Below, in pieces: positions 1,290-61,730 of a DNA stretch of 64,000 nucleotides. Position numbers and translations under genes: made by a program. The stretch is from Epiperipatus broadwayi (lineage: Eukaryota; Animalia; Onychophora). The notes under the pieces were generated by a model. It was not told where the DNA came from and did no database searches. It worked only from the letters and a program-made list of their open reading frames with translations. The DNA is taken from the NCBI GenBank assembly GCA_028023455.1, contig JAQFVV010000007.1:3658001-3722000 (forward strand), written 5' to 3'. The stretch's first letter is position 1; each line of letters opens with the position of its first letter.

Positions 1290-4200
1290 TATTAAAAAAA
1301 ATTAAATTTCTCTCATGACCATGGTTTCATCTATTCACAAATAAATCTTGTGAAATCCAACTACAAACAGACAATTTATATATACACTAAACAGAAATAT
1401 TTGCACATAATTCACTTCAAAAACCACACACTTTAATATCAAAAGATGTTTTTATGAGATTGATGGCCTCAAATTCAAAAAGATTTATTGTCAGAGTTTC
1501 TTTAACTTTGCTGTTTGTTTGTTTGTTTTTTCATAAAAGGCCTGTATTCAGTTCATGAGTATACAATACTAAGTTAAGATACCTATTTTTAATTCTATTC
1601 TTATGAACTTTAATTCTTCCATTGAGATTTATTTTACTTTTACCTATATAAACTTCAAGGAATCTTATAAACTGTGCCAGGAATAGACTTTATTAATCAA
1701 CTGTTTTGAAGTATTTAATAAATTTAAATCAAGACCTTTCTACCAAGCAGCTTTCATACCACCTAATAAATGAATGTTTTTATAAACCAATCTATAAACT
1801 GATGACTTAAATGATTAAAAAATAAATTCTATTTTCACTAACAATTAAATTTTAATTAATATCAGATATAAAATATTTTTATTAAATATAATATTCATTA
1901 ATAAATTCATGATTATAATCCAATTCAATATAATCAGAAGCAAATTGACTCCTTTAAATACAAGCATTCTTTTCAAAATTAAGGCTTATATTCTTATAAC
2001 AAATGTTTAATAAAGAAAGCTTATGAGTAAAAGTTTTGATAACTGTCAGGTCTTATCATTTCATAAATTTTTATGTTTAATAAAATGATTACAAAATAAA
2101 ATATTATCAAACTTATTAACACTTAAATCCAAAAATTTAACAAACCAAATGTACCTCCCTCAATAGTAAAATTAATATTAGAATCAAATGCATTCAATCT
2201 ATCTGAATAACAAATAAACAATCAACAGATCTAATGAATAATTTTCAATATGCAGAAAATGATTAATACTCATCATCATCATCATCAAGCATTATCAATC
2301 CACGGCAGAATGAAGGTTCAATCCATCTCCGATTTTTAGCTTTTCTTCTCCACATAACCCCTGCACACTATCTTATTTCATCCATCCATCTCACATGTGG
2401 TTTCTTTCTGGATCTTTTACAATCTCTTGGAATCCAGTTTAAGATTTCAATTGTCCATCTATTTTCATTCCTTCTAGCAATATGTCAGCTCAATTCCACT
2501 TCAGTCTTTTAATTTTTTCAATGAGGTTAGTAACACCTGTTTGTTCTCTTACCCATATATAGGATTGCATTTTCAATCTCTTCTTACTTCCAATATGCAT
2601 TTCTCCGTATTTCTTTGAATGATCTGAAGACTCTGTATTGCTCTTCTATTATGTGTCCAAGTCTCAGATCCATAAGTAAGAAATAGTAAAACACATTTAT
2701 TAGACACCTTCCTTTTCAAACACATGGGCATATTTCCGTTTAGTATCAAGTTATTTCTATCGCCAAGTTTAATTCTATTATTAATTTCATCCATTATGTT
2801 TCCATCTGTATTAACAAATTGACTAAGGTATTTGTAGCTGTTAACTTCTTCTAACTCATCATAATCAATCTTTATTTTCATATTTTGAGAAAATCCATTA
2901 AACATTACTTTAGTCTTTTTAACATTTATCTTTTGTCTTACTTTCCTACTTTCATCTGATAACTCCTGCAACATTTCCTGCAGCTCTAAAGCATTATTTG
3001 CAAAAACAATTATATCATTGTAAAATCTAAATGACTTAAATAATCTCCATTTACTTTCACTCCTTTAGCTTCCCATTTTAATCCACAAAATACTTCTTGC
3101 AGCACTGCTGTAAAACGTTTTGGAGATATAGAGTCACCCTGTCTTACACCTTTTTCAATGTTGACTTTCCTAGTATCATTATGTAATCTAATTGTTGCTA
3201 TTGCATTTTTATAAATATTCTTTAAAATATGACAATATCCTGGAGCCATACCTCGATGACCCAATGCTTTAATCACTGAAGAAATGCTCATAGAATCAAA
3301 TGCCTTTTCATAATTTACAAATCCAAAGCATAATGGCAACTCATATTCATTTGCCCTTTCTACAACTTCTCTCAATAACTGGATATGATCTACTGTACTA
3401 AAATCACTTTTAAATCCAACTTGTTCTCTTGGTTGTGGAAATCCAATGTTCTCTGTAGACGAGTTGTAATTATCTTGGTAAAAACTTTGTATAAAACTGA
3501 TAAAAGGCTGATAGGTCTGTAATTTCTAATATCTTCTTTATCACCTTTTTTAAATATTAATATTAATACTGCATTCTTCCAATCATCTGGTATATCTTTA
3601 TCATTTAGACAATTGGTATATAACTTTGCTTAAAAAAATTCTATTTCTTCACCTGCTTCTTTTAATATATCAATTATAATTTCATCATTACCTGGAGCCT
3701 TTCCTTTCTTCATATATTTAATTGCATGTCTCACTTCTTCATTTAAAATTCTGGGCAATTACTGCTCTCTAAAAAAATAATATAGTCAGAGCACATTAAA
3801 AAAGAAATAACAATCAATAATCCTTTCCTCTTTAATCTTATAAAACACATTGTTGCACAAAGTACATTGAATTCTCTCAACAATAACAAATCATGAATAA
3901 CTTGTATCTTATCTGCAAAAAAAAAATATTAATTTCCCTAAAATAGAAAGAAATATATTAATACTATTTAATCTATCAGCAAATTAATAGATATTTTCAA
4001 TATTTACACTATCTAATAAATAAATGCCTCAAAAGAAGAACAGAGATAAAATTGAACCAAAACTAATATAATTTGTAAAAATCTTACAAGAAATTTTGAA
4101 ATTTTATTAACAATTCCCACCATCCACCCCCACCCAATAAAATCAAAAATATACCTAAAAAAAAAATTATCTTTACAAGACTTAAGATTAAAAAAAGTTT

Positions 4201-4440
4201 AGGAGTCAAATAATTGCTAGGATAACAATTTAAAAAAAACTTTATCAAAAAAAAATTGTATTTTCCATAATTTTCATAATACCAATCAATTTAGATTTTT
4301 TTTTATTAGGATCACAATTTAATACAAAATGCTTTCCATTATTTAGCACTAAAGACACTTTATTATTATTAAATGCTTTTATTTAAGTTACAATCTCTGT
4401 TTGTTGGTTTATTTGTTTGTTTGTAAACATTTTTACTTAG
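1290..4440 (-). mobile_element. Decayed Penelope-like element (RT + GIY-YIG remnant), interrupted by an RTE LINE
   Basis: Minus-strand remnants read SIPGTVYKIP..YIG..RIKVHK (GIY-YIG, ~1560-1700) and DRLNAFDSNINFTIEG (RT, ~2170-2230). Collinear with the copy at 11940-15030 on both sides of the RTE insertion. Carries gaaac-catg-gtc, the 3' half of a hammerhead, at 1313-1328. Confidence 0.75.
2270..3762 (-). mobile_element. 5'-truncated, frameshifted RTE-clade LINE
   Basis: ORF-track fragments 2573-2974 and 3010-3375 align to the intact RTE ORF at 4870-6447. The 3' end carries a (GAT)n tail at ~2270-2287. Possible diverged ~10-bp target duplication (gagcagtaat / gagtattaat on the minus strand). 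Confidence 0.93.
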
Positions 4441-4699
4441 ATCAGAATAAAATTTTAAAATAGATGTTTAATAGAATTAAATTTTAATATAATTTGTTGA
4501 AATTTGATAATTTCTTCTAAATCACCATCAACGGAATTTAGGTAGGTGACCTTGTTTCTTAGATCTGGTCCACAAGGTGGCAGAAATTTGGTATATTTTG
4601 CTATTAAAATTTGAAAGACATTTTTAGAACTTAAATATGTTTTAAGTAATGCATGCAGTTTTTTTGTTGGTTTCAATTGAAAGCTTGATTTAAGTTAGA

Positions 4700-6460
4700 A
4701 TAAAAGAGTTGAAAATGATATAAGAAAGTATAACTGTGAACTAGCAAGGAAAGCTGTAGAAGAAAATAAAAGTCTTAAGAATGTAAAACAACATTTTGGT
4801 ATTGGTAGGAAATTTATATCTGCAATAAGAAAAAAAGATGGAATTATTACTAAAAGGAGAGATGACATCATGAAATTGGTAGATTTTTATCAAGAATTAT
4901 ATAGTAATAAAGAACAAGTACCTCCTATATCTATTACATCTTCCAAATTGCCCAGAATTTTAAATGAAGAAGTGAGACATGCAATTAAATGTATGAAGAA
5001 AGGAAAGGCTCCAGGTAATGATGGAATTATAATTGATATATTAAAAGAAGCAGGTGAAGAAATAGAAAAAATTTTAGCAAAGTTATATACCAAATGTCTA
5101 AATGATAAAGATGTACCGGATGATTGGAAGAATGCAGTAATAATATTAATATTTAAAAAAGGTGATAAAGAAGATATAAGAAATTACAGACCTATCAGCC
5201 TTTTATCAGTTTTATATAAAATTTTTACCAAGATAATTACTACTCGTCTACAGAAAACATTGGATTTCCACCAACAAAGAGAACAAGCCGGATTTAAAAG
5301 TGGTTTTAGTACAGTAGATCATATCCAGGTATTGAGAGAAGTTATAGAAAGGACAAATGAATATGAGTTGCCATTATGCTTAGGATTTGTAGATTATGAA
5401 AAGGCATTTGATTCTATAAACATTTCTTCAGTGATTAAAGCATTGGATCATCAAGGTATAGATCCAGGATATTGTCATATTTTAAAGAATATTTATAAAA
5501 ATGCAACAGCAACAATTAGATTATATAATGACAATGGGAAAGTCAACATTGAGAAAGGTGTAAGACAAGGTGACTCCATATCTCCAAAACTTTTTACAGC
5601 AGTGCTGCAAGAAGTATTTTGTGGATTAAAATGGGAAACTAAAGGAGTGAAAGTAAATGGTGATTATTTAAGTCATTTAGATTTTGCAGATGATGTAGTT
5701 GTTTTTGCAAATAATGCTTCAGATCTGCAGGAAATGTTGCAGGAATTATCAGATGAAAGTAGGAAAGTAGGACTAAAGATAAATGTTAAAAAGACTAAAG
5801 TAATGTTTAATCGATTTGCTCAAAATATGAAAATAAAGATTGGTTATGATGAATTAGAAGAAGTTAACAGTTACAAATACCTTGGTCAGATTATTAATAC
5901 AGATGGAAACATAATGGAGGAAATTAATCATAGAATTAAACTTGGTTGGAGTACTTTTGGTAGACATAACTTGATACTAAAAGGAAATATGCCTATGTGT
6001 TTGAAAAGGAAGGTTTTTAACAAATGTGTTTTACCAGTTCTTACTTATGGATCTGAGACTTGGACACTTAATAGAAGAGCAATTCAGAGACTTCAGACCA
6101 CTCAAAGAAGTATGGAGAGATGTATGTTGGGAGTAACAAGAAGAGATCGTAAATGCAATGTATGGGTAAGAGAACAAACAGGTGTTACTGACCTCATTGA
6201 AAAAATTAAAAGATTGAAGTGGAGTTTGGCTGGACATATTGTTAGAAGAGATGATAATAGATGGACAATTGAAATTTTTAACTGGATTCCAAGAGATTGT
6301 AAAAGACCCAGAAAGAGACCACATGTGAGATGGATGGATGAAATAAAAAAGTGTGCAGGGGTGATGTGGAGAAGAGAAGCTAAAGATCAGAGAAGATGGA
6401 TTAAACTTGGAGAGACCTTCATCCTGCAGTGGATTGATAATGGTTGATAATAATAAAAAA
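4700..6460 (+). mobile_element. 5'-truncated young RTE-clade LINE
   Basis: Homology to the longer copy (19505 onward) starts at ~4700. Ends in ctgcagtggattgataatggttgataataata, the terminus shared with the other copies. Confidence 0.95.
4870..6447 (+). CDS. RTE-type reverse transcriptase ORF (525 aa, uninterrupted, lacks the endonuclease domain)
   Basis: Motifs GKAPGNDG, YRPISLL, EQAGF, FVDYEKAFDS, GVRQGDSISPKLF, FADD, YKYLG and the RTE C-terminal LTYGSETW...AGHIVRR...RPRKRPHVRW. Confidence 0.93.
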   Translation: MKLVDFYQELYSNKEQVPPISITSSKLPRILNEEVRHAIKCMKKGKAPGNDGIIIDILKEAGEEIEKILAKLYTKCLNDKDVPDDWKNAVIILIFKKGDKEDIRNYRPISLLSVLYKIFTKIITTRLQKTLDFHQQREQAGFKSGFSTVDHIQVLREVIERTNEYELPLCLGFVDYEKAFDSINISSVIKALDHQGIDPGYCHILKNIYKNATATIRLYNDNGKVNIEKGVRQGDSISPKLFTAVLQEVFCGLKWETKGVKVNGDYLSHLDFADDVVVFANNASDLQEMLQELSDESRKVGLKINVKKTKVMFNRFAQNMKIKIGYDELEEVNSYKYLGQIINTDGNIMEEINHRIKLGWSTFGRHNLILKGNMPMCLKRKVFNKCVLPVLTYGSETWTLNRRAIQRLQTTQRSMERCMLGVTRRDRKCNVWVREQTGVTDLIEKIKRLKWSLAGHIVRRDDNRWTIEIFNWIPRDCKRPRKRPHVRWMDEIKKCAGVMWRREAKDQRRWIKLGETFILQWIDNG

Positions 6461-6678
6461 ATAAAATTAGTTTAATATAATTTTCTTATGCTTTTTTTTT
6501 AAAAAAAAAAGTTTTCTAAGAAAAAAATGTCAAACACTTCAACAGAAAGAATGTCTTCATATTTTAAGCTACTTAATGATTTATTTTCTACATATATAAT
6601 TACTTACACATACTAAATATGATATACATAAGAAATACGTATATTGACTTAAATGTAGAACAATCTACTGATATATAT

Positions 6679-7867
6679 TGTAACGGAAATGAAAATTAAA
6701 TTGAGAAATCATTTGTAACAGAAATATAAAAATATCATGATTATTAATTATTAAAATATGCATTTGTAATCTGTCATTTGTAACAGTATGAATAATATTG
6801 TAATGATGAATGATAAAAAGGCTGTTAAAAGACTGTTACCTTTATAACTGATTACAATCTATATATATTGATGAATGATAAAATGATAGTTGCTATAATT
6901 CAATAACTAAATATAACATTATAGCCCGTTTGCAACTATCCTAAACATTAATTCTGTCACGCTTATAATGAAATAAATAAATTATCTCATTTCTCAACAC
7001 ATAAAATAATAAAATGACAATTAAAACTGTCATCATTAAAGATTTAAAATATTTAGATATTGGGGAAGTCATTTCAACAATAAAACATACTGGCCATTGT
7101 CATCAAATAAAATAATATTAAATATAGCAACTGAATAAAATTACCCACTGTGAGATTCCTGGAGTGCATTATGCTTATCTCCAATACTAGGTTCTTTTAA
7201 CAAAGAATACTTCCTATTCTTCTTTCCAACCATATAAGACCATTCATGGTCACACGCACACACTGGTGCTATTCACGATAACTTATAAAACATATTATAT
7301 AAAGTTAATATTATGAAGTTAGAAAGAAGAATAGGAAGTATTCTTTGTTAAAAGAACCTAGTATTGGAGATAAGCATAATGCACTCCAGGAATCTCACAG
7401 TGGGTAATTTTATTCAGTTACTATATTTAATATTATTTTATTTGATGACAATGGCCAGTATGTTTTATTGTTCAAATGACTTCCCCAATATCTAAATATT
7501 TTAAATCTTTAATGATGACAGTTTTAATTGTCATTTTATTATTTTGTGTTGAGAAATGAGATTATTTATTTATTTCATTATAAGCGTGACAGAATTAATG
7601 TTTAGGATAGTTGCAAATGGGCTATAATGTTATATTTAGTTATTGAATTATAGCAACTATCATTTTATCATTCATCAATATATATAGATTGTAATCAGTT
7701 ATAAAGGTAACAGTCTTTTAACAGCCTTTTTATCATTCATCATTACAATATTATTCATACTGTTACAAATGACAGATTACAAATGCATATTTTAATAATT
7801 AATAATCATGATATTTTTATATTTCTGTTACAAATGGTTTCTCAATTTAATTTTCATTTCCATTACA
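6679..7867. repeat. Palindromic unit 1A (arms ~550 bp, loop 87 nt)
   Basis: 6679-7230 is the reverse complement of 7318-7867 with few substitutions. Ends TGTAA...TTACA. Confidence 0.95.
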
Positions 7868-7869
7868 AA

Positions 7870-7891
7870 TGGCGCCCCACGTTGGGCACCA
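7870..7891 (-). promoter_or_regulatory. tRNA-Lys(CUU) primer-binding site inside a 22-nt near-palindromic linker
   Basis: Minus strand reads TGGTGCCCAACGTGGGGC, a 17/18 match to the canonical Lys1,2 PBS TGGCGCCCAACGTGGGGC. Plus strand reads TGGCGCCCCACGTTGGGC (16/18). Confidence 0.9.
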
Positions 7892-7893
7892 TT

Positions 7894-10800
7894 TGTAACT
7901 GAAAGAAATTATTAATTATTAAAATATATTTATAATCTGTCATTTCTAACAGTATGAATAAATAAAGATGAACTGACAAAAGGTTGATAAAAGACTGTTA
8001 CTTTTATAACTGATTACAATCTATATATTAATGAGTGATAAAATGATAGTTGCTATAATTCAATAACTAAACACTAAACAGGATATATGATATGCTCCAG
8101 CGGTTCATCATTTGTAACCAAGTAAAATTAAATAATAAATGAATTCACTGTGTTAGCTAAAATACAATTTATAATTAAATAAGGATGACGCTAACATATA
8201 AATAAGAATATATGCATATCATGCTCTATTTGGGTGTCTATTTTTAATTAATTAAATATAACATGATAGCCCATTTGCAACTATCCTAAACATTAATTCT
8301 GTTACGCTAATAATGAAATAAATAAATTATCTCATTTCTCCATATAAAATAACAACAATGAAAATTAAAACTATTATCATTAAAGATTTAGAATATTTAG
8401 ATATTGGGGAAGTCATTTGAACAATAAAACATACTGGCCATTGTCATCAAATAAAAGAATATTAAATACAGCAACTGAATAAAATTACCCACTGTGAGAT
8501 CCCTGGAGTGTATTTTGCTTATCTCCAATACTAGGTTCTTTTAACCAAGAATCCTTCTCATTCCTCTTTTTATGTATATACGACCATTCACGGTCACACG
8601 CACACACTGGTGCTATTTATAACAATGTATAAAATTATCATATAAACTTAATATCATTAAGTTGGAAAGGGATTAAATCACTCTTTATTCAGTTTAGCTA
8701 AGTACATATGTTTTCCCATGAGTGCCACTAGATTGTTTTAAATCTAGATAAATCTGTTTAGAGTGTACTGAGTTCAAACTCATTCGGTACATTTTTATTA
8801 CACATGACTTGGATGACTAATGAAAAAAATAAAAATGACATTCTTATATTTTATTCATGTCAATAAAATCATAAAATCCCCATATTACAAAATTTATATA
8901 GATCAAGACTCTTATAGACATTGCTAGCTCATTTTTCGTATATTGATGAACAGACAAGTATAATCTTATTAATGGCTTCTAAACAAGCATCGTGAAGACC
9001 ATTATTGATATTGATGGCCATTTAACTAGATTATTTATCACAATATAAAGGTAATAATGATGATGATAATAATGATGATGATGATGATATCACATTAATA
9101 ATGATAATAATAGTGATGATGATACCAGCCATAGCTTTATACTGAACTCACAACAATAAATTTATCTTTATAAACTTATAGGCATTTTTTAAAAATCATC
9201 CCTTGTCAAAATGGGATTTAATTATTACATTCACTAGCATTTATATAAGTTTATGTTTATTTACTAAAATACTTTGATAGTTAAAACTAGGATTTAATAA
9301 TACTAGTGATGATGACTGATCATCATGGATCTCTATGCATGATATTCAACTTTCTACAAATCCTTATTTAATAAATCATTAATAAATTATAATCATTAAA
9401 TCTAATGTTTAACATAATTAATATATTTAGTAAATAAGGATTTGTAGAAAGTTGAATATCATGCATAGAGTCCGTGATGATCAGTCATCATCACTAGTAT
9501 TATTAAATCCTAGTTTTAACTATCAAAGTATTTTAATAAATAAACATAAACTTATATAAATGCTAGTGAATGTAATAATTAAATCCCTTTTTGACAAGGG
9601 ATGATTTTTAAAAAATGCCTATAAGTTTATAAAGATAAATTTATTGTTGTGAGTTCAGTATAAAGCTATGGCTGGTATCATCATCACTATTATTATCATT
9701 ATTAATGTAATATCATCATCATCATCATTATTATCATCATCATTATTACCTTTATATTGTGATAAATAATCTAGTTAAATGGCCATCAATATCAATAATG
9801 GTCTTCACGATGCTTGTTTAGAAGCCATTAATAAGATTATCCTTGTCTGTTCATCAATATACGAAAAATGAGCTAGCAATGTCTATAAGAGTCTTGATCT
9901 ATATAAATTTTGTGATATGGGGATCTTATGATTTTATTGACATGAGTAAAATATAAGAATGTCATTTTTATTTTTTTCATTAGTCATCCAAGTCATGTGT
10001 AATAAAAATGTACCAAATGAGTTTGAACTCAGTACACTCTAAACAGATTTATCTAGATTTAAAACAATCTAGTGGCGCTCGTGGGAAAACACATGTACTT
10101 AGCTAAACTGAATAAAGAGTGATTTAATCCCTTTCCAACTTAATGATATTAAGTTTATATGATAATTTTATACGTTGTTATAAATAGCACCAGTGTGTGC
10201 GTGTGACCGTGAATGGTCGTATATACATAAAAAGAGGAATGAGAAGGATTCTTGGTTAAAAGAACCTAGTATTGGAGATAAGCGAAATACACTCCAGGGA
10301 TCTCACAGTGGGTAATTTTATTCGGTTGCTATATTTAATATTCTTTTATTTGATGACAATGGCCAGTATGTTTTATTGTTCAAATGACTTTCCCAATATC
10401 TAAATATTCTAAATCTTTAATGATAATAGTTTTAATTTTCATTGTTGTTATTTTATATGGAGAAATGAGATAATTTATTTATTTCATTATTAGTGTAACA
10501 GAATTAATGTTTAGGATAGTTGCAAACGGGCTATAATGTTATATTTAATTAATTAAAAATAAGACACCCAAATAGAGCATGATATGCATATATTCTTATT
10601 TATATGTTAGCGTCATCCTTATTTAATTATAAATTGTATTTTAGCTAACACAGTGAATTCATTTATTATTTAATTTTACTTGGTTACAAATGATGAACCG
10701 CTGGAGCATATCATATATCCTGTTTAGTGTTTCGTTATTGAATTATAGCAACTATCATTTTATCACTCATCAATATGTAGATTGTAATCAGTTATAAAAA

Positions 10801-10907
10801 TAACAGTCTTTTATCATCCTTTTGTCAGTTCATCTTTATTTATTCATACTGTTACAAATGACAGATTATAAATATATTTTAATAATTAATAATTTCTTTC
10901 AGTTACA
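7894..10907. repeat. Palindromic unit 1B (arms 1483 bp each, loop 48 nt)
   Basis: 7894-9376 is the reverse complement of 9425-10907. About 5 differences in the outer ~170 bp that I compared. Ends TGTAAC...GTTACA. Confidence 0.97.
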
Positions 10908-11939
10908 ATATATATATATATAAGCTGTGTCGAATTGACCTAAGTAAAATCATATATATTAATTGAAGTTTGTTTATGATATATTTTTGGTAACTATTTT
11001 TAAAAAAATTCCAATCAAAAGGAAAAATGTCAGACACTTAGTTTAAGTCAATGATTTATCATACACATATATAATTATGTAAACATAATCATTACAATTA
11101 TTGCAGAAAAACAGGGTAAAAAATTTATTCTAGAATTGCATATTAACTTATTTGCAGAAATATCTGATATATATCTAAACTATAAGTATCAAGTCGATTT
11201 AAAGTACAATAGTTTTATTTTCTGTATCAATACTAGAATGTTAAAAATAAAGAGATTAATTTTTTTTTAATGTTGTTTTTATTTACCATGCACTTAATAT
11301 TGTTTCTTCAACCATAATTGGGATTTTTAGATTTAACTTAAAATAAAAGTATGGAAAGTCCAGAAATTAATTATGGAAGAACGAGATCTGGGTCAGCTAA
11401 TAAAAATGAAAGTTACCAGTGAGTGCATAACAATATTTTTTAATAAATTTATCTCAGGTAAATCATGTTATATATTATTTTTCCATAATTTTAAGAGGAA
11501 TGCAAAGAAGCTGTCTATAAAAATGTGATTTTAATATTTAATTCTCAAAATTTAGGATTTGTGAACAAATATAAAAATAAACATTTTAAATGTGTTAAAA
11601 ATCTTAATTTTATTTTTTTTTTAAGTAATGACTATATTTTCTCAGGTTCATTATATTCCTTGATATTTGCTCTTTCTAATATGTGTTATATTATTATTAA
11701 TGTGTTCAAACTGAAGATATTATACAAATTGTACCTCAAGCTTGTCTAAAATCCAATATAGTGGCCTTCAAAAGTCAAGAAGTAGCAATATTAATATGTA
11801 ATTGATTTTATTTCTACTATTGAATGTTGTAGAAATATTCTCGATCATAATAAATTGTCTTCACAGGTAATTTTGAATACGCAATTACTTGAGAGAATAA
11901 AATTTGTTTTTGCCCGAAAAAGATCTTAAAAAAAAAAGA

Positions 11940-14900
11940 TTAAAGACCAATGATATTATCCTATTAAAATAAGACAACTGTTTTGTATTGTTAAATAATA
12001 GTGATTGTAAAAGTAAAGTTTCTTTAGAGTTTAATAATGGGAAGTATTCTATTTTAAACTATGATCCTAGTGAAAAAATAAAATCTAAATAGACATATTA
12101 TCAAAATTATTGCAAATAAAAATTTTTTTGATAGAGCTATTTATTTATGTTGCTATTCTAGTACTTATTTGGCTCTTAAAGTTTTTTTCAATCCTAAGTC
12201 TCATAAAGATAATTTTCCTTTAAGATGTATTTTTGATTTTGAGGGGGTAGAGGGCTGTAGATAAAATTTCAAATTTTCTTATAAGGTCCCTTAAAAACTG
12301 TATTAGTTTTGATCATTTTTGGGCCCCTTCAGACAATTAATAAAATAAATGATTTTGTTTTAGAGGTTGATTATGTATATGGTAGTTTAGATATTGAAAA
12401 TATGTATCAATCGATAGATTAAACCATATTAATGTATTTCTTTCTATTTTAAGAAAACATGAATATTTTTTTGCAGATAAGATTAAAGTTGTTCGTGATT
12501 TTCTATTATTATTAAACGATTTGATATATTTTATGTGTAATAACATGTTTAATAAGATTAAGAGGGATGATTTGTTTGTTATTTCTCCTTTGTGTTTTGT
12601 CTACTTTATATTATTTTTGTTTCTTTAAAATTATTTGTTAGCTATCTTGATGATTGTTTATTTGTTATTCAGAAAGATAAACTAGAGTTGTTTTTGACAG
12701 ATTGAATTATTTTGATTCTAATATTAATTTTATTATTAAAGGAGGAGGCTTGATTTGTTAATTCAAAATGTTTGGATGTAAGTGTCAATACAGTTGATAT
12801 TTTATTTTGTAATCATTTTATTAAATATAAAATTTAAGAAATATGATAAGACATGACAGTTATCAACCTTTTAGTCATAAGAAATTTGGTACTTGTGCAT
12901 TTTCCTGTCTACCAAGATGGCAGCTCATATTTTTGATTAATATATAATTTCAGGGACTACAAGAAATCTTTACAAAAAAAAAAGCTGCTAGTATTTAATA
13001 TTTACATTTTCATTTCTGTGACTTATTTTAAAAAATAAATCATTCTGAAAAAATTAATTACAATGTTTATACTTTATTTATTATTACTTTTTTGTATTAA
13101 TTTATTAATAAAAAAATTAAAAAAAGATATAAAGGTGAGGAATATTTATAATGGCGGCTACAATCTCTAATGGCCTTCAAAATCACCACAAATGAATCAT
13201 GTTGGTGGTGCAATCAGTGCCACATAAATTCTGCTAATTGGAATTCAAGTGTTATGTAGTTCAACGGTCTTTTTCGTTTCACCATTTGACCAGCTTCAAA
13301 GTCTTTTAATGTTTTGCGTATGCACACTGGTAGCTAAATCAACAATTATAGCAGTGATTTTTTGAAAATGTTTAAATCCTGCATGCCTTAATTCATCATT
13401 TTTATTGTCTTCCAATAGTCCATATAAATTGTAGATCTATTTGCGACAATTTGTTTTATCATATCTTTAAGAATAGCCCTGTTCTACTTGGAACAGTTAC
13501 AATGAAGCATTCATTAGTTTCTCTGCACAAGCCATTGAATAACCACTATTGTGGAAGTATTCTCCCCTGATGATTCTTATGCTTGGTAAAAAGTTTCATC
13601 AATTTTAATAATTCTATTAGGCCATCCGATTTTGCATGACAGTCGAAATAAAAGACTAGATGTGCACACTTCCCTCAGGTATGTGTTCGAATCTATGACA
13701 GTGTTGTTGGACAAATCCAACTGATCTTTTTCCCATCCAATGAATATTAAATCTCTATTCTAGCTGTATCTCAGTGCAGTCAGAAATGGAATTTTTCAAA
13801 TCCTTGAACCATGTTCTTTTACAAATGAATAATCTGTTTAAACAACATTTCAAGCTGCATTGCCATTGTAGGGCTAATTGCATGTAAAGTGTCACATTGT
13901 AACCATTAACGCACTTCTCGGGAGAGCAGGATTCCGTACCTTTGGAAATACTCAAACGCACCATGTTCTGCGACAAGAAGGTCCCAAATTTTGATCATTA
14001 TGAAAATTTTGCAAAATACAACTGACAAAAAGATTCAAGCTGAATTAAAACGAAGTATGATAATGTTCAAAGCACCCCATCACTTCCACATTATAAGTAA
14101 AAAAAAAAAAATTTAATAAAGTTTAATAATGAAATTTATCTGAATTTATTACTTTTTTAAGTTTTTAATTTTTTTTAAGAATTGAAAATGAAAAAATAAA
14201 TTGTGCACCATTGAAACTGTATATTTATCAAAAATATGAGTTGCCATCCTGGTAGACAGGTAAATACATAAGTACTAAAATTTCTTTATTGAATTTTTGT
14301 TATAGGAATATAAGACTTGATATTTTTGAAATTAATGCTTATATTTAATCGTCAATTTCCTTCTGATTGTACTGATTTGAGTTAAATCATGATTTATTAG
14401 AAATATTTAATAAAAATATCTGTAGGCCTGACCTTAATAAAAATTTAATTGTGAAAATAAAGAGTTTATTTCTTTATTATTTAAATCATTAATTTATAGA
14501 TTGGTTTATAAGAAGTTATTTATTAGTGTGAAAGTTGCTTGAAAGAAAGGTCTTCATTTAAATACATTATTAAATAACTCAAAATAGTCAATTGATAGTA
14601 TATCTATCCCTGATACAATTTATTAGATTACTTGCAGTTGCTGTAAAATTTATTTAAAATGAAAGTAAATTAAGTCTTTCTGAAAGAATTCAAGTTCACA
14701 AGAGCAGATTAAAAATAGATTTGTATATTCATGAACTAAATACAAGTCATAAAATATTATTTGACAATGAAGAAATTATCTTTTTTGAAAAAAATAAAGT
14801 TTAATAAGAAGAGTCAAAGAAACTCTGATGATAAATCATTTTGAATTTAAGACCATCAACCTCATGAAAAATGTCCTTTGTTATTAAACGTGAGTAGTTT

Positions 14901-28900: not shown

Positions 28901-30716
28901 TTTGTCCATATCTATATAGGTTAATGACTTTAAATTCCATGTATGAAACAGATGGTTCTGAATCTGCTGACAAGACTTCAAATTTATCAAATAAGATCAA
29001 ATCCAGATGACTTTATTATCAAATTTGGAAAATAAATTTGTTTGCAACCTCACAAGAAATTAACTTTTATGTCTTTGTCCTTCAGTTACAAATACTTGGT
29101 TGAATATCCAGAAATGGATCTTGATTTGAAATGAGTCTTCAATGGAGAGACTATATTGTGAATTATTGTCAAGTCCATTGTGCTTAAATGTTTCTGTACA
29201 TTTTTTGTAAGGCAAATTCTGTTTCTAATATCTGGTGAAGAATTATGTGAAAGAATTGGAAACCATTTCAAAGCATAGATTTGAGAGTAACAACAGTACT
29301 AGGTCTCATGAGAATATGTCAATATTTGATTGAACATACAAAAGTTTAATGTGGCACTTTTTTTTCAAAGAGGAATGCAGTATTCACCAATAAAATATAC
29401 TAGATCTAAATAGTGTCTGCAAACTTTCCAAGATTATTTCTACAATTATTTAAAATCTAATTTTAGATGAATAAAGAAAATGAATTGGGCAATGATCCAA
29501 GGATTATTCTAAATAATATGGGGAAGTTTTGTGTTCCAATTTATTTTTGCAGAAGAGTGTAGATTTTCAATCTTGACAAATTCAGAGAATTTTCTATTTA
29601 TGGAAAGTATTTCTTTTAAGAAGTCTGCTACATCCATTTACAATTCTTTAAAATTATTAGAATGATGTGTGCAAATAATAAATGTAATAAAAAATAATGT
29701 AAGTAAACAGATGAAAAGTTGATCTGCTAATAGAATTTAAAGCAATTAAAATGCTTCTGTAATTATTGTCGTAGTAATGCATGATTAGAATGTGCTAATG
29801 GATTAGAAAACTATTAAAATATTCTGAAGAACATTGTATTATGCCATTGGCATATTTCTTTAAATAGCACTAGAGATAAGCAAACTACAATTATCATACC
29901 TATATAATTAGCACTAATATGAAATAATAGTAAATTAAAGAGACATTGATATTACTAATGGAAAAGTAATATACTATTCCATATCAGGTGTACTCCAAAA
30001 AATGTCAAAATATAATATCTTGAAATTTATGAGGCCTATCAGTATAAAATCAATGCTCAATATTTAAGCAAGATGGTGCTGCTGTTGCAGAGAAATCCAT
30101 TCTGTATGTAATAAATAGATTGCAGAGTCATGTATAGGTCATCCTGACTTTTATTACTTATGTTAAGTCCTTCAGCAAACCTATGATACTTAAGCCATGT
30201 AAATATAGATAAAATGTATTAATTTATCTTTAACATAGGATAAAATATTTATGTATTCCCATTTAACTTATATTACTTTTGTATATTATACGTATGCTAA
30301 TCTAATACAATCAGTGCCTTATCATGTATTTTGTTAAGAGTATTTAATTAACATGACTTTTGGAAATTAGTTAAGACTGTGGATATTAATTAGAGAAGTT
30401 AAGGCAAATGTGTTTAACCTTCCAATTAGATATAGCACAAAGAAATGTCATCAGCATAGATAAATTTTCTGCATTCCAGATCTAGAAGATCATTGATTAA
30501 TATATTAAATACAAAGAAAAGATGATTCTTACAGTAAACTGTTCAATAGAATTTTGTATTTTCTATGACTATTATTAGTCATTGAATTTTTCTATTGGAA
30601 ACAATTTTGTGAAGAAAATTAATGGTTTTCCTGCACTTTAAGGTTTTAAAAACTTTTAGATCACTTTTCTAAACAGAAACATAGACCAATAAAGATAACA
30701 GCTGTTTTTAAGTTAC

Positions 30717-32075
30717 TGTAATGCTACAGGGAAATATGGGGTCATACCTTGGGTGATGGTCACCAGTATATGAACATCAACAGTCCTAAATTGGTTAGAC
30801 ATTTGTAACTCTATAGAAAATTGGAGTTTAAACCATGAGTAATCTGAGAGAATTGTATTTTTATCCTCAAGTTAAAAAAAATCTCAAAAGGGATGAGCAT
30901 AATAGATTATTCTGAAAGATCAGCACAGCTACTATAAGTTTACCAGCACTACCCATAAGAATAAGAACTATTCAAAAGAAGTAATCATTCATCATCATGA
31001 ATGATTAACAATCAAAAATAAAACAATCAAACTTGTAACTGGATTTGAAATGGGTCTTCTGTAGACCAGGCTAACTATTGAGCATTTCCCAGCTTTGGCA
31101 ATTATTTAAACCATAGTTTGGATGCACAAACTTAAGTACTAATCCATAAGAATACAACCAAAATAAATAATGGGATATTAAAACCTCATTTTCAATGCTC
31201 TGGTCACTTAGTACCATTAATGTACTGGCCAACTATAAACTTAATTTCTAATAAAGACCAAACTAAATAAAATGTAGTGCATGGACTTTGAAGAATATCC
31301 TATTTGTGCCTACCCAGAAATCATCATCATTATAATTATCTGGATGCCCATACACTAAATATAAACCCCCTATATATATCCAGCCATTATATATGAATCT
31401 ATCTCAGAAGAACACAAGCTCTATTACTTTTAGGTGACTAAGAGATGATGCAAAACAATTTTTAACAATTGAAATACAAGTTTATTAACAAAAATAAAAA
31501 TGATATTAAGGTCTCTAGAATATGGCTCTACAATTAGAAATTAAGTTTATAGTTGAGCAGTACATTAATGGTACTAAGTGTCCTGAACATTGATGATGAT
31601 CAGCAGGTTTTAATATTCCAGCATTATTATTTTTTGGTTATATTCTTATAGATTAGTGCTTAAGTTTGTGCATCCAAACTATGGTTTAAATAATTGCCCA
31701 AGCTGGAAAAAGTTCAATAGTTACCTTGGTCTACAGATCTATTTCAAATCCAGTCACAAAATTGACTGTTGATTTATTTTTAATTTCTAATCATTCATGT
31801 TGATGAATGGTTATTTCTTTTTGAATATCTATACTTTTGGGTAGTGCTGGTGAACTTATAGTTAGCTGCGCCAATCTCTCAGAGTGATCTATTATGCTCA
31901 TTCCTTTTGAGAGTTTTTTAAACTGAGGATAAAAATACAATTCCTCAGATCCCTTATGATTTAAACCCCAATTTTCTGTATAGATATAAATGGCTAACCA
32001 ATTTAGGGTAGTTGATATTCACATACTGGTGACCATCACCTGAAATACGACCTAGTATTTCCCTGTAGCATTACA
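30717..32075. repeat. Palindromic unit 2A (arms ~540 bp, loop ~280 nt)
   Basis: 30717-31252 is the inverse of 31533-32075, roughly 80% identical by eye. The terminal 20 nt tgtaatgctacagggaaata match exactly. Confidence 0.92.
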
Positions 32076-32077
32076 AT

Positions 32078-32099
32078 TGATGCCCCACATTAGGCACCA
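32078..32099 (-). promoter_or_regulatory. Decayed tRNA-Lys PBS linker
   Basis: Same 22-nt length as 7870-7891 and 18/22 identical to it. All differences are transitions, two of them at CpG. Confidence 0.8.
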
Positions 32100-32101
32100 A
32101 T

Positions 32102-32857
32102 TGTAATGGAATGGGGACATCAAGGTGGTGATAGTTTTAGTGAACTTGGGGTGATGGCAAAGCATTATCTCTCAAGTAAATTAAATTTAAAATGAAAAAT
32201 CAAATTAATTATTAAAGAAATCTTTAAAACCATAAAATATATAAGAATTTTATATATTATAAAAGAGCATGAGAACATGAAATCTCTCAGACAGATCATC
32301 CAGTTACTCCTTAGACTAATTGTAAATATAATTATACATCACTCAGCATTATCAATAAGTAATGGTAAGTATATATAATCAATTTAATGAGCCATCTTGA
32401 TTTTCTTTATGAATGAGCAAAACTGTGGATGGCTCATTAAATTGGTGGTTCATTCACCCATCTACCTGGTAGATCTTTCCAGTAGTCACACACTCATCTC
32501 AAAGATTAAGCCATGCATGTTATAGTACTTGCCTTTCTTTACGAATGAGCGAAACTACAGATGGCTCATTAAATTGATTACTTATACTTAATTTTTACTT
32601 ATTGATAATGCTGGGTGATGTATAATTATACCTACAATTGCTCTAAGGAATAACTAGCTGATCTGTCTGAAAGATTTCATGTTCTAAAGCTCTTTTGTAA
32701 TATAAAAAATTCTTATATATTTTGTGATTTTAAACATTACTTTAATAATTAATTTGATATTTCATTTTAAATTTAATTTACTTGGGAGTGATGATGATTT
32801 CCCATCACCCTAGGTTCACTAAAACTATCACCATCCTGATACCCCCAGCCCATTACA
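32102..32857. repeat. Palindromic unit 2B (arms ~297 bp, loop ~160 nt)
   Basis: 32102-32398 is the inverse of 32559-32857. Ends TGTAATGG...CCATTACA. Confidence 0.92.
32463..32574 (+). pseudogene. 18S rRNA 5'-end fragment (nt 1 to ~110), with a second partial copy at 32402-32445
   Basis: tacctggtagatctttccagtagtc...tctcaaagattaagccatgcatgt...gcgaaact...atggctcattaaat matches the conserved eukaryotic 18S 5' end. Confidence 0.9.
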
Positions 32858-33550
32858 TTATGTTAAAACCTTTTTTATTTTTAAGTTATTAAAGATAAAA
32901 TTTGTTCACAGTAGCTTTTTCCTGTCATATATCCTGCCTTTTCTAAACATATATTTGTAAAAGTTTTAGTAATATGATTTTTTCAAACAGTTCTAGGGAA
33001 AATGTAAGAATGATATAGTTTTGCTTTTATGCAAAATTTTTAGAATAGTTCCTATATGAATAATATTTTTCCAAACACACTTGGTTCTAAAAGTATGCTT
33101 TTTATTCCTGAGGATTTTTCTGATTTAAGACATTTGAGAACAAGTTCTTAACAGATTGCTATTAGAGGAAAAGAAGCTTGCAGTTCCACACTGATGAAGA
33201 TTTTTTTATCAATCAATATTGAGTTAGAATTCAGATATATGAGACTGAAAGCCTCATTAGTGATGCCAATAGTAGTCTTGTTTTTTTTTTCTAACTAAAG
33301 TGACTAAGCTTTTCAGCTAGATCTTGTAAAGTTCTTGTTTTTTATAATTCCATTTTTCTTTTCTAGCATCACATACTGATTTAATAAGTTTGTCAGCAAT
33401 TTTTTGATCTTTGATGACAAATATTGGCTACAAAGATTATTTTAGATTATTTTCAACCTGGAATGTATTTTTTATATATATACTTGAAGAATGGTCTCTT
33501 TGGCTATTGTTGTTATGAGTATATTAAACCTTTTATATATAAAAAGAACT

Positions 33551-33796
33551 TTAGACAAATTCACCTTTCTTATTACTGTTTTAATTATTATTTTATTAAA
33601 ATTAATCAATCTTATAGTTTTGATTGACCAGCAGTCTTCTTCAGAGTTATAACATATATAAATATATGAATACACTAAGCATGTTTATATATATACTTAT
33701 AGTGCAGAAAAAGATTGCTATTAATTGAAAGTCTAAGGTTGATTAATTTTAATAAAATAAGCATTGTAACAATTTAAGAAAGGTGAATTTGTCTAA
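33551..33796 (-). repeat. Inverted repeat enclosing a hammerhead-like motif (PLE pseudo-LTR type)
   Basis: Arms 33551-33614 and 33734-33796. Minus strand 33617-33644 reads ctgaaga agactgc tgg tcaatc aaaac. Confidence 0.7.
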
Positions 33797-36652: not shown

Positions 36653-36911
36653 ATAAGATGTGATATGTTGGATTATTTCCATCAAATGTTGAATGTATAG
36701 AAAATTTTAAACTTTATTTAAACTTTCCAAATACAAACAACTTGTTAGTAATAACACACAAATAGACAATATTACTAACCTGTATTGTCTGTTTGAGTGT
36801 TATTACTAACAAGTTGTTTGTATTTGGAAAGTTTAAATAAAGTTTAAAATTTTTTATGCATTCAACATTCACTCATAAATGATGGAAATAGTCCAACATA
36901 TCACATCTTAT
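36653..36911. repeat. Fold-back / MITE-like palindrome (arms ~120 bp, loop ~11 nt)
   Basis: ataagatgtgatatgttgga...gacaata pairs with tattgtc...tccaacatatcacatcttat. One ~9-bp indel. Confidence 0.9.
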
Positions 36912-37887: not shown

Positions 37888-38307
37888 TATATAAAAATTG
37901 AAAATAAATTATTATTCTAAATTCATAATAGGAAAACTCTTTTTAACATTATCTTATAATTTACTGCATCAAGAGTCTTAGAAATATCAATATATACCAA
38001 AGAATCTTTAAGCTCTTCTCCAATGACTGACTAATATTGCTAACATGATCACTATTTGGTACAAAACCAAACAAATTTTGATAAATTATTAATTTTGATC
38101 AAAAATGATATTCTTTGATCACATTACTGATTCAAGCATTTTTGAAGATAAAGACAAAATATTGGTCTGTAATTTTCACTACTACTAGAGTCTCTTTTTT
38201 TGAGAATGTAATGAAAAACTAAACAAAAATACCAATACAAAAATTAATATCTTCAGAAATATTACCAAAATCATCTTTTCCTTTATTTTTTCTATATGTT
38301 ATATAAA

Positions 38308-38879
38308 TCCAATTTATCCAAATCACTTCAAACACTTTTTAGCAAAAACCTTTTATTGTACATATATACATATACACCTATATTTCGACTGTGTTGAAAT
38401 GACAATTATATGAATATAAAATTAAATGTTTTATTGAGGTGGAGATAATAAAAATAAGGTTTAAGTTTATAAGGAATAGAAGTAATTAAGAGATTATGAG
38501 AAATAATAAAAATGAATAACATATTTAGATTAATAGTTGTTTTTGAATATGTATGTAGTTAGGAATACAATGTATAATTTATATTTTGTTTATATTGTAT
38601 ATTTTATTTTATATTAACTGGATTATTTTATTTGTATTTAATTATATTTACTTCAGTTTTATTAGGTTTTGTTATATATTTTATGTTGTTTTTAGTTTTT
38701 TATTGTTTACATTTTTTAAGGTATTATTATTTATATAGTTATGTGTTTATTTTATTTTGTTCATTATATTATAGCTCTGAAGAAGACTGCAGGGCAGATC
38801 GAAACATAGGTGTATGTGTATATATGTACAATAAAAGATTTCTTCTAAAAAGTGCTCGAAGTGATTTAGATAAATTGGA
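38308..38879 (+). repeat. Inverted repeat with hammerhead-like motif (PLE pseudo-LTR type)
   Basis: Arms 38308-38388 and 38799-38879. ctgaaga agactgc agg gcagatc gaaac at 38777-38805. Confidence 0.72.
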
Positions 38880-39502
38880 ATTAATATCTCTTTATTCTCT
38901 TTCAACATTTGATTATCAATTCTATGAATACCATCTGATTTAATGATTTTCAAATTCTTTATGGACAAATTTACTTCTGAATCTGTAATATTTAATCATA
39001 AGAATGATGGGCTAATATTTGTACTAATTTCTGCATTAGCATAAGATAAACATATTTATTAAATGGATTAACAACTTTAAATCCATTTTCATTTATATCT
39101 ACCAACTTTAATCAAATCATTTATGACTTTCTTTTTATAATAACACTAGTAGTCTATGGACTGTATTTTTATTGTAGGCTTCAAACAGCTAAATTTCTTT
39201 ACTTGGCTTTAAAAAACTTACTTATTTAATGCTTATGAAAGGAAAAAATGTTTTCAATTTAATTTATAAAAGTTTGCCAATGTAAATTTTTTTTTAAAAA
39301 AATCACTTTATGTAAAGTTATCTGTGACAGTTTCCTTACTATTAAGTTTTTCTTGTGTGGTAGTATTTTTCATTTCAATTTTAAAAAAAAAATTGAGTTA
39401 TATGTTCTGTAACACTCCATATGAAAAGCAAGGAAAATCCTAAGCTATTTGTAAAGTAACTGTTATTTCAATCTATGCAACAAATAATGTGCTTTATTTA
39501 CT

Positions 39503-49536: not shown

Positions 49537-50042
49537 TATCCATACCATATATAATCCTTCTAAAAACTTTTCTTCTTCCTTTCCTTTATTTCTGCTATCT
49601 TCATATACAATATTGCAATTCAAATAATTCTTCTTACATTTTTTTCAGCAAAAACTTATTATTATTACAGTTTCGATTATACCTTGCTGTCTTCATCAGA
49701 TCTACATAATTCACGTACACATAACAATACAACCATTACATAATACATTTCATATTTTATAAAAATTAATAATTAAAAATTAGAAAAGTGATTGTATATA
49801 AGAGATATAATATACATTAAAGAATTTTAAGAAGTTAATAGAAAATTAATAATTTTGAGAATTGATAAATTTGTATAAAACATGAAATGTATTATGCAAT
49901 GGTTGTATTGTTATGAGTATTTGAATTTTGTAGATTTGATGAAGACTGCAAGGTACAGTTGAAACTGTAATAATAATAATAATAAAATTTTGCTGAAAAA
50001 AGTGTAAGAAGAATTATTTGAATTGTAATATCCATACCATAT
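49537..50042. mobile_element. Palindromic PLE-type insertion with a hammerhead-like motif in each arm and a 14-bp TSD
   Basis: Arms 49611-49774 and 49860-50030. Motifs at 49670-49699 (minus: ctgatga agacagc aagg tataatc gaaac) and 49936-49965 (plus). tatccataccatat at 49537-49550 and 50029-50042. Confidence 0.82.
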
Positions 50043-60845: not shown

Positions 60846-61730
60846 TTTTATTAGTCATTCATTAGAATAGAGATTTTCCAATAATGAATAATATTTCTGT
60901 AGTTTAATGTTCATTAGACAACACTCATACAAGATAGGGACTAGCTTCTATCACTTTTAACACATTGTGGAGAGATGTAATCATAAACATATGACCCAAG
61001 ATATGTGAAAAGGATAAGGATCTATGGTCTCCAAGATGCACATTTTGAGCTGCATCAACACTCATCAGTTGGCCCAGACTACAATTCCTTACACATCTTT
61101 ATTATTGTTCATTATATATAGAGAGAGCAAGTTATTACAGGTTAATTGATGTGTCGAACATACTGCCCTCACAACTTTGACAAATCACTTAATAAAAGTA
61201 TATGAGTACTTTTTATTAGTCATTCATTAGACTAGAGATTATCCAATAATGAATACTTCTGTAGTTTAATTTTCATTATACCACTCTCACACAAGATGGA
61301 AACTGGTTTCTATTAGTTTTTAACCCCTTGCGGTGGGATGGAATCATAAACATATGACTAAAGTCATGTGCAAAAAGATCTATGCTCTCCAAGATGCACA
61401 TTTTATGCTGAATGAGCACTCATTAGTTGGTCCAGACCACAATCTCTTACACATATCTTTATTGTTGTTCAGTATATATATATATATATATGTTAATTCT
61501 AATATTTTCACGGATAAAAGATGTCATTATTATTACTATTTGTGGAATATTCTGTGTAGTGAAAAAGTTAAATGCTGACATTTCAGTACAATATCAAGTA
61601 CTTGATATTGTACTGAAATGCCAGCATTTAGCTTTTTCACTACATGGAATATCCCGCAAATAGTAATAATAATATGACATATATATATATATATAAACAG
61701 CAAATTACTACAGTTTAACTGATAAGTGTC
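60846..61730 (-). repeat. Tandem ~364-bp repeat (two copies), each with a decayed minimal hammerhead; retrozyme or pseudo-LTR-like
   Basis: Copies start at ~60846 and ~61210. Minus-strand motifs ccaa ctgatga..aaaa tgtgca tc ttgg (61031-61072) and ccaa ctaatga gtgct cattc agcat aaaa tgtgca tc ttgg (61389-61430). Related to 35570-35613. Confidence 0.75.
61521..61680. repeat. Loop-less 160-bp palindrome inserted in a (TA)n run
   Basis: Centre caagt|acttg at 61599/61600. Ends TGTCA...TGACA. TA runs on both sides. Confidence 0.92.

Follow-up and report, generated by a model that had tools for sequence, protein, structure and literature searches.

A 64,000-nucleotide (nt) stretch of the genome of the onychophoran Epiperipatus broadwayi (contig JAQFVV010000007.1, positions 3,658,001 to 3,722,000; hereafter the window) carries a composite of two imperfect palindromes, termed 2A and 2B, which are connected by a short linker and interrupt a decayed reverse transcriptase frame of a long interspersed nuclear element (LINE). 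The palindromes are built from the ends of long terminal repeats (LTRs) of two different families, and the linker contains a predicted primer-binding site (PBS) for tRNA-Lys(CUU). We consider it fairly probable that the composite is a one-off by-product of reverse transcription, in which two self-primed strong-stop hairpins, one from each LTR family, became joined at their PBS tails and were inserted by an integrase. The composite looks like a rare fossil of failed reverse transcription and not like a new self-copying element.

Anatomy of the composite and its insertion into a LINE

The position of the composite and the sizes of its units given by the initial annotation proved exact on re-reading (Table 1). 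Both units have the same termini, TGTAATG...CATTACA. Alignment of arm against arm gave 87.8% identity for 2A and 89.2% for 2B (12.2% and 10.8% mismatches). A second composite in the same window, locus 1, consists of the units 1A (6679-7867, 1189 nt) and 1B (7894-10907, 3014 nt) with a linker at 7868-7893, and its arms are 98.9% and 98.3% identical, respectively. The divergence of about 20% first estimated for the arms of the present locus 2 was too high, but the contrast between an old and a young composite stood (11-12% here versus 1.1-1.7% at locus 1), and arm identities of 88-89% and 98-99% in one window agree with the long period of activity that had been proposed. A short-read contig covers positions 32011-32213 across 2A, the linker and 2B with zero differences and at single-copy depth, which, together with the diverged arms, rules out an assembly artefact.

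The composite had been described as inserted in one piece between two halves of one LINE reverse transcriptase. On the minus strand of the joined flanks, the motif GKSYCEQILSL precedes the junction by 61 nt and FIYADD follows it at a distance of 258 nt, the two motifs being 106 amino acids (aa) apart. This spacing is ordinary for a LINE reverse transcriptase; the matching motifs are 125 aa apart in an intact LINE open reading frame (ORF) of the window (4870-6447). The window also contains, at about 47.3-49 kb, a diverged paralog of the LINE; its alignment is weak but runs colinearly over the junction to within 2 nt (offsets of 429 nt on one side and 431 nt on the other). Because of the motifs (GxSxxxQI..L and YADD), their spacing and the colinear paralog, rather than a profile match, we regard the flanks as two probable halves of one LINE reverse transcriptase, as had been claimed. 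A blastx comparison of the joined flanks with the intact ORF 4870-6447, which belongs to a different clade, returned no match. In DNA searches of the 5.6-Gb genome, in which all match counts are first-look candidates and not copy numbers, both flanks were found to belong to old repeat families with 72-77% identity, and some copies of the downstream half reach the insertion point. No empty paralogous site was found, the flank-by-flank DNA searches returning no contig common to both flanks.

The tetranucleotides TTAC and TTAT are the only pair around the composite that resembles a target-site duplication (TSD). The flank alignment bore out colinearity but not a clean 4-bp duplication. Separate duplications were looked for at each unit, and none was found at the edges of 2A (TTAC/ATTG) or 2B (CAAT/TTAT). 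Moreover, the 26 nt between the units are not LINE target DNA but a PBS motif, which locus 1 and at least 33 further sites also have. The insertion as one piece is supported by the single TSD-like pair, the PBS-motif linker, the equal decay of the arms in both units and the colinearity of the LINE.

Parent families, primer-binding site and loop polarity

When the genome was searched with 2A, all 39 scored places besides 2A itself were single-armed, and 19 fetched loci (given here by L numbers) agree. In each place, the match on one strand covers 2A from its first position to about 650-830, and that on the other strand covers 2A positions 817-1359. The copies begin with (AT)n followed by TGTAAYGC and extend for about 2.5 kb to GGTTGCA followed by (AT)n, as in the parent L071 (524 to about 3047), with TG...CA ends. 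Neither an ORF nor an internal repeat was found in the copies of this family, and the parents of 2A therefore look like solo LTRs of an abundant family. The unit 2A consists of the terminal 820 nt of such an LTR and an inverted copy of its terminal 543 nt. The turn falls where the parent copy L044 has CTACAATTAAAAGTC; once past CTACAATTA, 2A continues with its own reverse complement from about position 541 downward. The arms of 2B (about 40-280 and the mirror positions) are matched by a second family, whose members are single units 230-280 nt long that begin with (AT)n followed by TGTAATGGGATGGGG, the apex of 2B being unique.

The initial annotation had presented 2A and 2B as unrelated palindromes with little in common beyond their first ~7 nt. 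In keeping with its view that they are not diverged copies of one LTR, BLAST found no match between them, and a global comparison of the first 300 nt gave a similarity over shuffled sequences that is weak (z = 3.8) and confined to the first ~55 nt. This similarity reaches further than 7 nt, and copies of the 2B family extend into motifs that are also present in 2A. Together, the two observations suggest that 2A and 2B represent distinct families of one LTR lineage, so that the term unrelated was too strong. The 1B-type LTR end was also found as direct pairs 7.3 and 10.9 kb apart, which are presumably normal full-length elements. The palindromes are fold-back derivatives of ordinary, abundant, non-palindromic LTR families and do not form families themselves; the other copies of the 2A and 2B parent families are single-armed. 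Elsewhere in the genome (G000:C6200:7943336-7946132), two 1B-type LTR ends stand inverted 2.5 kb apart and may be another young palindromic unit. An (AT)n microsatellite very often abuts the LTR ends of these families (L032-L050, L054-L068 and window positions 6670-6678 and 10908-10920), which suggests that the families strongly prefer TA-repeat targets; locus 2, lying in a LINE, is an exception.

The linkers had been described as 22 nt long and the same at both loci. The actual distance between the unit ends is 26 nt, and the two linkers are identical at 20 of the 26 positions. Transitions account for all four internal differences, and two of these fall at CpG sites. The linker of locus 2 reads AT-TGGTGCCTAATGTGGGGC-ATCA-AT on the minus strand, and two nucleotides separate the LTR end from the PBS (...CCATTACA AT TGGTGCCTAATGTGGGGC). 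ATCA, which differs by one transition from the ACCA fill-in of locus 1 and further sites, makes the linker a near-palindrome. At L016, the 18-nt motif TGGTGCCCAACGTGGGGC continues into 45 more nt complementary to a tRNA with the anticodon CUU. This continuation identifies the linker motif, as judged by sequence, as the predicted PBS for tRNA-Lys(CUU), which we take to be the canonical tRNA-Lys1,2 PBS. The T at PBS position 4 is likely the result of CpG decay. A C/T difference at this position between the two sides of some linkers was considered as proof of heterotypic pairing and rejected, the position being a decaying CpG site.

About 3,000 occurrences of the PBS motif were counted in the genome, against none in the reversed control. 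It stands in mixed contexts, among them tRNA-Lys-like short interspersed nuclear elements (SINEs), palindromes and LTR-PBS-leader arrangements of the ordinary kind; in 17 motif loci, ARAGORN detected no complete tRNA gene. In the ordinary arrangements, the LTR end beside the PBS reads ...TTACA or ...TTATA and ORFs follow the PBS (326 aa in L006, 337 aa in L022 and 209 aa in L023, the last with a weak Retrotrans_gag match of 22.1 bits, below the cutoff of 24.1). At L012, a 2A-like LTR end stands directly at a PBS that is followed by an ORF. These loci indicate that the TGTAAYG ends of 2A and 2B are probably ends of the unique 5' region (U5) read on the opposite strand; every arm would then be the U5-proximal part of an LTR. 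Seven of the motif loci (L007, L008, L010, L011, L014, L026 and L028) have the 3' end of tRNA-Lys including CCA, followed by a common sequence (..TGGAGAAAAAAAAATCTGTGCCGGTC..). They belong to a tRNA-Lys-headed SINE-like repeat family, which accounts for about one quarter of the PBS-motif matches.

Of the 14 positions in the PBS core, GCCCAACGTGGGGC, 12 are self-complementary. The lowest-energy self-duplex of the 18-nt PBS has a 4+4+4-bp register with TGGY unpaired on each side, leaving a 4-nt fill-in. The length expected from two annealed and filled-in PBS tails is 2+4+14+4+2 = 26 nt, the linker length seen. This calculation makes the pairing feasible and does not prove it. Further palindromes have PBS sequences at their centres. 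In L013 (1440-1570; G000:C4, near 19891200), four tandem PBS-like motifs (variants of TACAAAATGG-GCCCAAC-GGGGC) lie between 98% identical arms of more than 1.3 kb each. In L016 (1480-1570; G000:C5, near 12719560), the PBS and the tRNA complement lie between 96% identical arms of at least 1.45 kb, meaning that the primer tRNA was copied for about 63 nt, far past the usual 18.

Self-primed strong-stop DNA would be expected to have an antisense strand that runs from the outer end and includes the loop, and a shorter sense copy beside the PBS. In each of the four units that could be judged (2A, 2B, 1A and the left unit of L009), the loop and the outer arm are colinear. For 2A, colinearity with the parent extends from the outer end as far as position 820. 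In 1A, colinearity with 1B covers positions 1-650 and reaches as far as 1B position 777; the return arm begins at 1B position 680. The left unit of L009, about 150 nt long, is colinear from its outer end and throughout the loop with its relatives in L016, L017 and L024, and in 2B an 18S rRNA sequence is continuous with the outer arm. The loop polarity fits what self-primed minus-strand strong-stop DNA would show.

The 18S rRNA sequence in the apex of 2B (32463-32580) was found by searching 221 nt alone against Rfam, where it matched SSU_rRNA_eukarya from model position 1 with 74.3 bits (gathering score 50; E 2.4e-20). The same search on the whole 3.6-kb region returned only spurious miRNA-like hairpins. 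The 18S is in sense with the outer arm, which is the template strand under the proposed model. Furthermore, the apex sequence matches 18S-like places in the genome, two of which extend a few bases into the 18 nt preceding the 18S start. This is the appearance expected of a cDNA that left the element RNA, moved on to 18S rRNA and ended at the first base of the latter.

The junction of two facing LTR ends recurs in the genome. The pattern TAYA-NN-TGNN-GCCCCACNTTNGGC-ACCA-NN-TRTAA was found 35 times, compared with 0 in the reversed control. The flanking dinucleotides are complementary at 26 of the 35 junctions and not at the other 9. The mixed forms of the linker core are GCCCAACGTTGGGC and GCCCCACGTGGGGC, and GCCCAACGTTGGGC is present at 2 of the 35 junctions, as heteroduplex repair would give. 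Of 30 randomly sampled motif loci, 4 or 5 had a linker flanked on either side by LTR ends. The smallest unit measures 47 nt (L025) and the largest 3 kb (1B). Among the best-scoring genome matches, we found no sibling palindrome of 2A or 2B, no sibling of their turns and no 18S apex with 2B-specific sides. The varying unit size, the lack of siblings and the normal 1B-type pairs give the picture of repeated accidents of active LTR families and not of a lineage of palindromic elements. The idea of a new type of self-propagating element found no support, as the lack of siblings of 2A and 2B leaves no sign of the composite replicating.

Other palindromes are present in the window. A LINE-built palindrome of about 4 kb (2326-6393) lies 285 bp from the locus-1 composite, with arms that are 89-95% complementary and a centre of about 1.2 kb. 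One of its arms has the intact 525-aa ORF (4870-6447), which matches RVT_1 with an E value of 3.7e-37. Six more inverted-repeat pairs in the window have arms of 70-115 nt that are 82-95% complementary.

Table 1. Features of the composite, its flanks and further inverted repeats, in positions of the window.
Feature	Position	Strand	Description
2A unit	30717-32075		1359 bp; ends TGTAATGC...GCATTACA; imperfect palindrome
2A outer (long) arm and loop	30717-31536	+	820 nt, antisense from LTR U5 end; begins TGTAATGC
2A fold-back junction	31533-31536	+	4-nt microhomology ATTA
2A inner (short) arm	31533-32075	+	Inverted copy of terminal 543 nt; ends GCATTACA beside linker
Linker between 2A and 2B	32076-32101		26 nt; ATTGATGCCCCACATTAGGCACCAAT
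Linker as predicted PBS	32076-32101	-	tRNA-Lys(CUU) PBS with two transitions, then ATCA
2B unit	32102-32857		756 bp; ends TGTAATGG...CCATTACA; imperfect palindrome
2B inner arm	32102-32405	+	Antisense U5 end of second LTR family; begins TGTAATGG
Partial second 18S rRNA copy, 2B apex	32396-32444	+	18S positions ~60-108; direct repeat D1 of 32528-32576
18S rRNA 5' end, sense	32463-32580	+	Model positions 1 to ~110; Rfam match
2B outer arm	32551-32857	+	Ends CCATTACA at target site
Left 4-bp TSD copy	30713-30716	.	TTAC
Right TSD copy	32858-32861	.	TTAT; 3/4 positions same as TTAC
Interrupted decayed LINE reverse transcriptase frame, downstream half	30100-30716	-	FIYADD at 30448-30468
Interrupted LINE reverse transcriptase frame, upstream half	32858-33600	-	GKSYCEQILSL begins 61 nt from junction
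Further inverted-repeat pairs	49656-49979, 36685-36869, 38304-38883, 61526-61673, 326-921, 12882-14282		61526-61673 without spacer

Proposed origin and alternative explanations

The composite could have arisen from two RNAs of different LTR families, both primed by tRNA-Lys(CUU) and copied from the PBS through U5 to the 5' end of the RNA. The product would be minus-strand strong-stop DNA, and in the case of 2B the enzyme would also have switched to 18S rRNA and run to its 5' end. Instead of jumping to the repeat region (R) at the 3' end, each cDNA would have snapped back at a microhomology of a few bases (ATTA in 2A) and copied itself to its own 5' end and then the 3' 18 nt of the tRNA, creating a hairpin with a 3' PBS tail. 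The two tails could anneal through the self-complementary 14-nt core, and the extension of each 3' end through the partner hairpin would yield a blunt linear duplex of palindrome A, the 26-nt linker and palindrome B. Since both termini of such a duplex would be U5 ends (TGTAA...TTACA), integrase might have inserted it into the old LINE with a 4-bp duplication. The pairing of independently made hairpins, already suggested by the initial annotation, fits the linker length and the polarity in four of four units; what we infer is the mechanism itself, including the order of events, the packaging of both RNAs together and the part played by integrase.

Several observations weigh against this origin of the composite. 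The self-duplex of the PBS, at -15 kcal/mol, is unexceptional, as 83 of 500 shuffled 18-mers (17%) do as well. The 18 nt ahead of the 18S start lack an explanation, and a second 18S piece follows; these 18 nt could be external transcribed spacer, so that the template may have been pre-rRNA. The 820-nt long arm of 2A is long for an R-U5 region, and the long arm of L009 passes a TATA-like box, so that the 3' ends of the cDNAs need not coincide with transcription starts. The two TSD copies agree at only three of four positions. A tree of the two 2A arms and 19 family copies is a star in which the arms are not sisters, a result that neither supports nor refutes a common origin of the arms. Moreover, the genome is rich in other palindromic retro-insertions, and a general fold-back process could be acting. 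Finally, every step is reconstructed from the sequences of one fossil and a few relatives and not from an observed molecule.

Serial template switching, an unlikely alternative in our view, would let one cDNA strand make all four arms in one particle, with an in-cis fold-back at the PBS and without annealing. Template switching is evident in 2B, where two separate pieces of 18S are present, and PBS-centred palindromes and the 63-nt tRNA read-through exist elsewhere (L005, L013, L016). The complementary dinucleotides at 26 of the 35 junctions are likewise what fold-back in cis predicts. However, such a fold-back also predicts sides that are mirror copies, whereas 2A and 2B differ in family and length and 1A, with 1189 nt, is far from the 3014 nt of 1B. 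The polarity of the outer arms on both sides of the linker better fits two strands of opposite sense.

We regard it as quite improbable that the composites form a self-propagating class of non-autonomous retroelements without a polypurine tract (PPT), which would be transcribed inside the palindromes and whose half-RNAs with a PBS would yield hairpins re-pairing randomly in the particle. The best-scoring matches include no sibling of 2A, 2B or the 18S apex, ordinary single-armed LTR copies lie nearest to the arms, and the units differ in length between 47 nt and 3 kb. Of the LTR, the palindromes also hold only the U5-proximal part, so that a promoter is not evidently included, and the 1B-type LTR end exists in normal elements, as the direct pairs indicate. 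In favour of such a class, the junction design recurs at 35 sites, young (98-99%) and old (88-89%) examples are found in one window and the partners are heterologous. We give similarly little credence to the idea that hairpin pairing through the PBS is a regular, PPT-independent side route, with dimers that are transcribed within, remade in each generation and composed of freely assorting halves.

An origin at the DNA level, by nested LTR insertions or by post-integration inverted duplication or repair that mimics a single insertion by coincidence, is suggested by the varied palindromes of this genome, including the LINE-derived one at 2326-6393, and by the imperfect TSD, but appears very doubtful in view of units that lack duplications of their own, 26 nt between them that are PBS motif and not LINE, an exact junction seen 35 times against 0 in the control, outer ends that are intact LTR termini with truncation always at the apex, and an 18S sequence that begins at position 1.

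In textbooks, the self-priming of strong-stop DNA is an in vitro dead end that is said to be suppressed within particles. If the proposed joining of two strong-stop hairpins is correct, such germ-line fossils show that self-priming occurs in vivo, that a self-complementary PBS can join two strong-stop hairpins in vivo, and that integrase can insert DNA in which both ends are U5 and neither was made from a PPT. The stopping point of a cDNA and the target to which it switched, here 18S rRNA from its first base, are recorded in each fossil, which could thus serve as a natural read-out of template switching and of the RNAs present in the particle. The presence of at least 35 such junctions in one genome makes the idea testable by a census. 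For genome annotation, it accounts for 'giant palindromes' that would otherwise be mistaken for foldback transposons.

Comparison with known systems

The composite shares with LTR-retrotransposon-derived DNA the TG...CA termini with a short TSD, and a PBS two bases after U5. Like TRIMs (terminal-repeat retrotransposons in miniature) and large retrotransposon derivatives (LARDs), it is small and non-coding, with TG...CA ends, a tRNA PBS by the LTR end and a short target duplication. However, each 'LTR' here corresponds to part of a longer LTR, in inverted form, and the longer LTRs belong to different families. A TRIM was rejected because the composite has no direct homologous LTR pair, each unit being itself an inverted repeat. 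A PBS is present, but the whole spacer is 26 nt long, with neither a PPT nor an internal domain. A TRIM would also require multiple copies, and none of the 2A or 2B palindrome or of their junction was found elsewhere among the best-scoring matches. The earlier argument against a standard TRIM, based on heterologous partners, is supported; the inverted partial LTR ends and the missing PPT and internal domain speak against one as well.

Ginger-type DNA transposons have TGT...ACA ends and a 4-bp TSD. The composite resembles these, foldback elements and miniature inverted-repeat transposable elements in its long inverted arms, its TGTAA...TTACA termini and its 4-bp duplication. It differs from them in that the arms come from LTRs without long terminal inverted repeats, a tRNA PBS joins the units and one apex contains the 5' end of an rRNA, which points to RNA templating. 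A foldback DNA transposon was rejected, as the inverted-repeat units have no target-site duplications of their own.

Aberrant LTR-LTR circle junctions keep PBS or tRNA letters, since plus-strand synthesis copies the primer. In the composite, too, letters derived from the PBS or tRNA are kept between two LTR ends. The circle junctions, in contrast, contain direct LTRs in the order U5, PBS and unique 3' region (U3), whereas the U5 ends face each other here in linear, integrated DNA.

Strong-stop cDNA of retroviruses, which extends from the tRNA primer to the 5' end of the RNA, is described as self-priming in a manner dependent on the trans-activation response element (TAR): it folds back and is elongated into a hairpin that is unable to undergo the first strand transfer (Guo et al. 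1997 and Driscoll & Hughes 2000, reviewed in PMC6088434). Self-priming is known from in vitro reactions and was not detected in endogenous reactions (review, PMC6088434). The literature searched contained no description of integrated hairpin dimers. The units 2A, 2B, 1A and the left unit of L009 share with self-primed strong-stop DNA an antisense first strand that starts at the U5/PBS border and includes the loop. They differ from it in having apparently been linked as pairs, inserted into the germ line and fixed, with loops of 70-280 nt and arms of up to 1.5 kb. The palindrome of L016, from the same genome, shares with the composite the primer tRNA and the fold-back of cDNA from an LTR end, but its PBS and tRNA sequences lie at the apex, whereas the PBS of the composite links the outer ends and the apices lie at the 5' end of the RNA.

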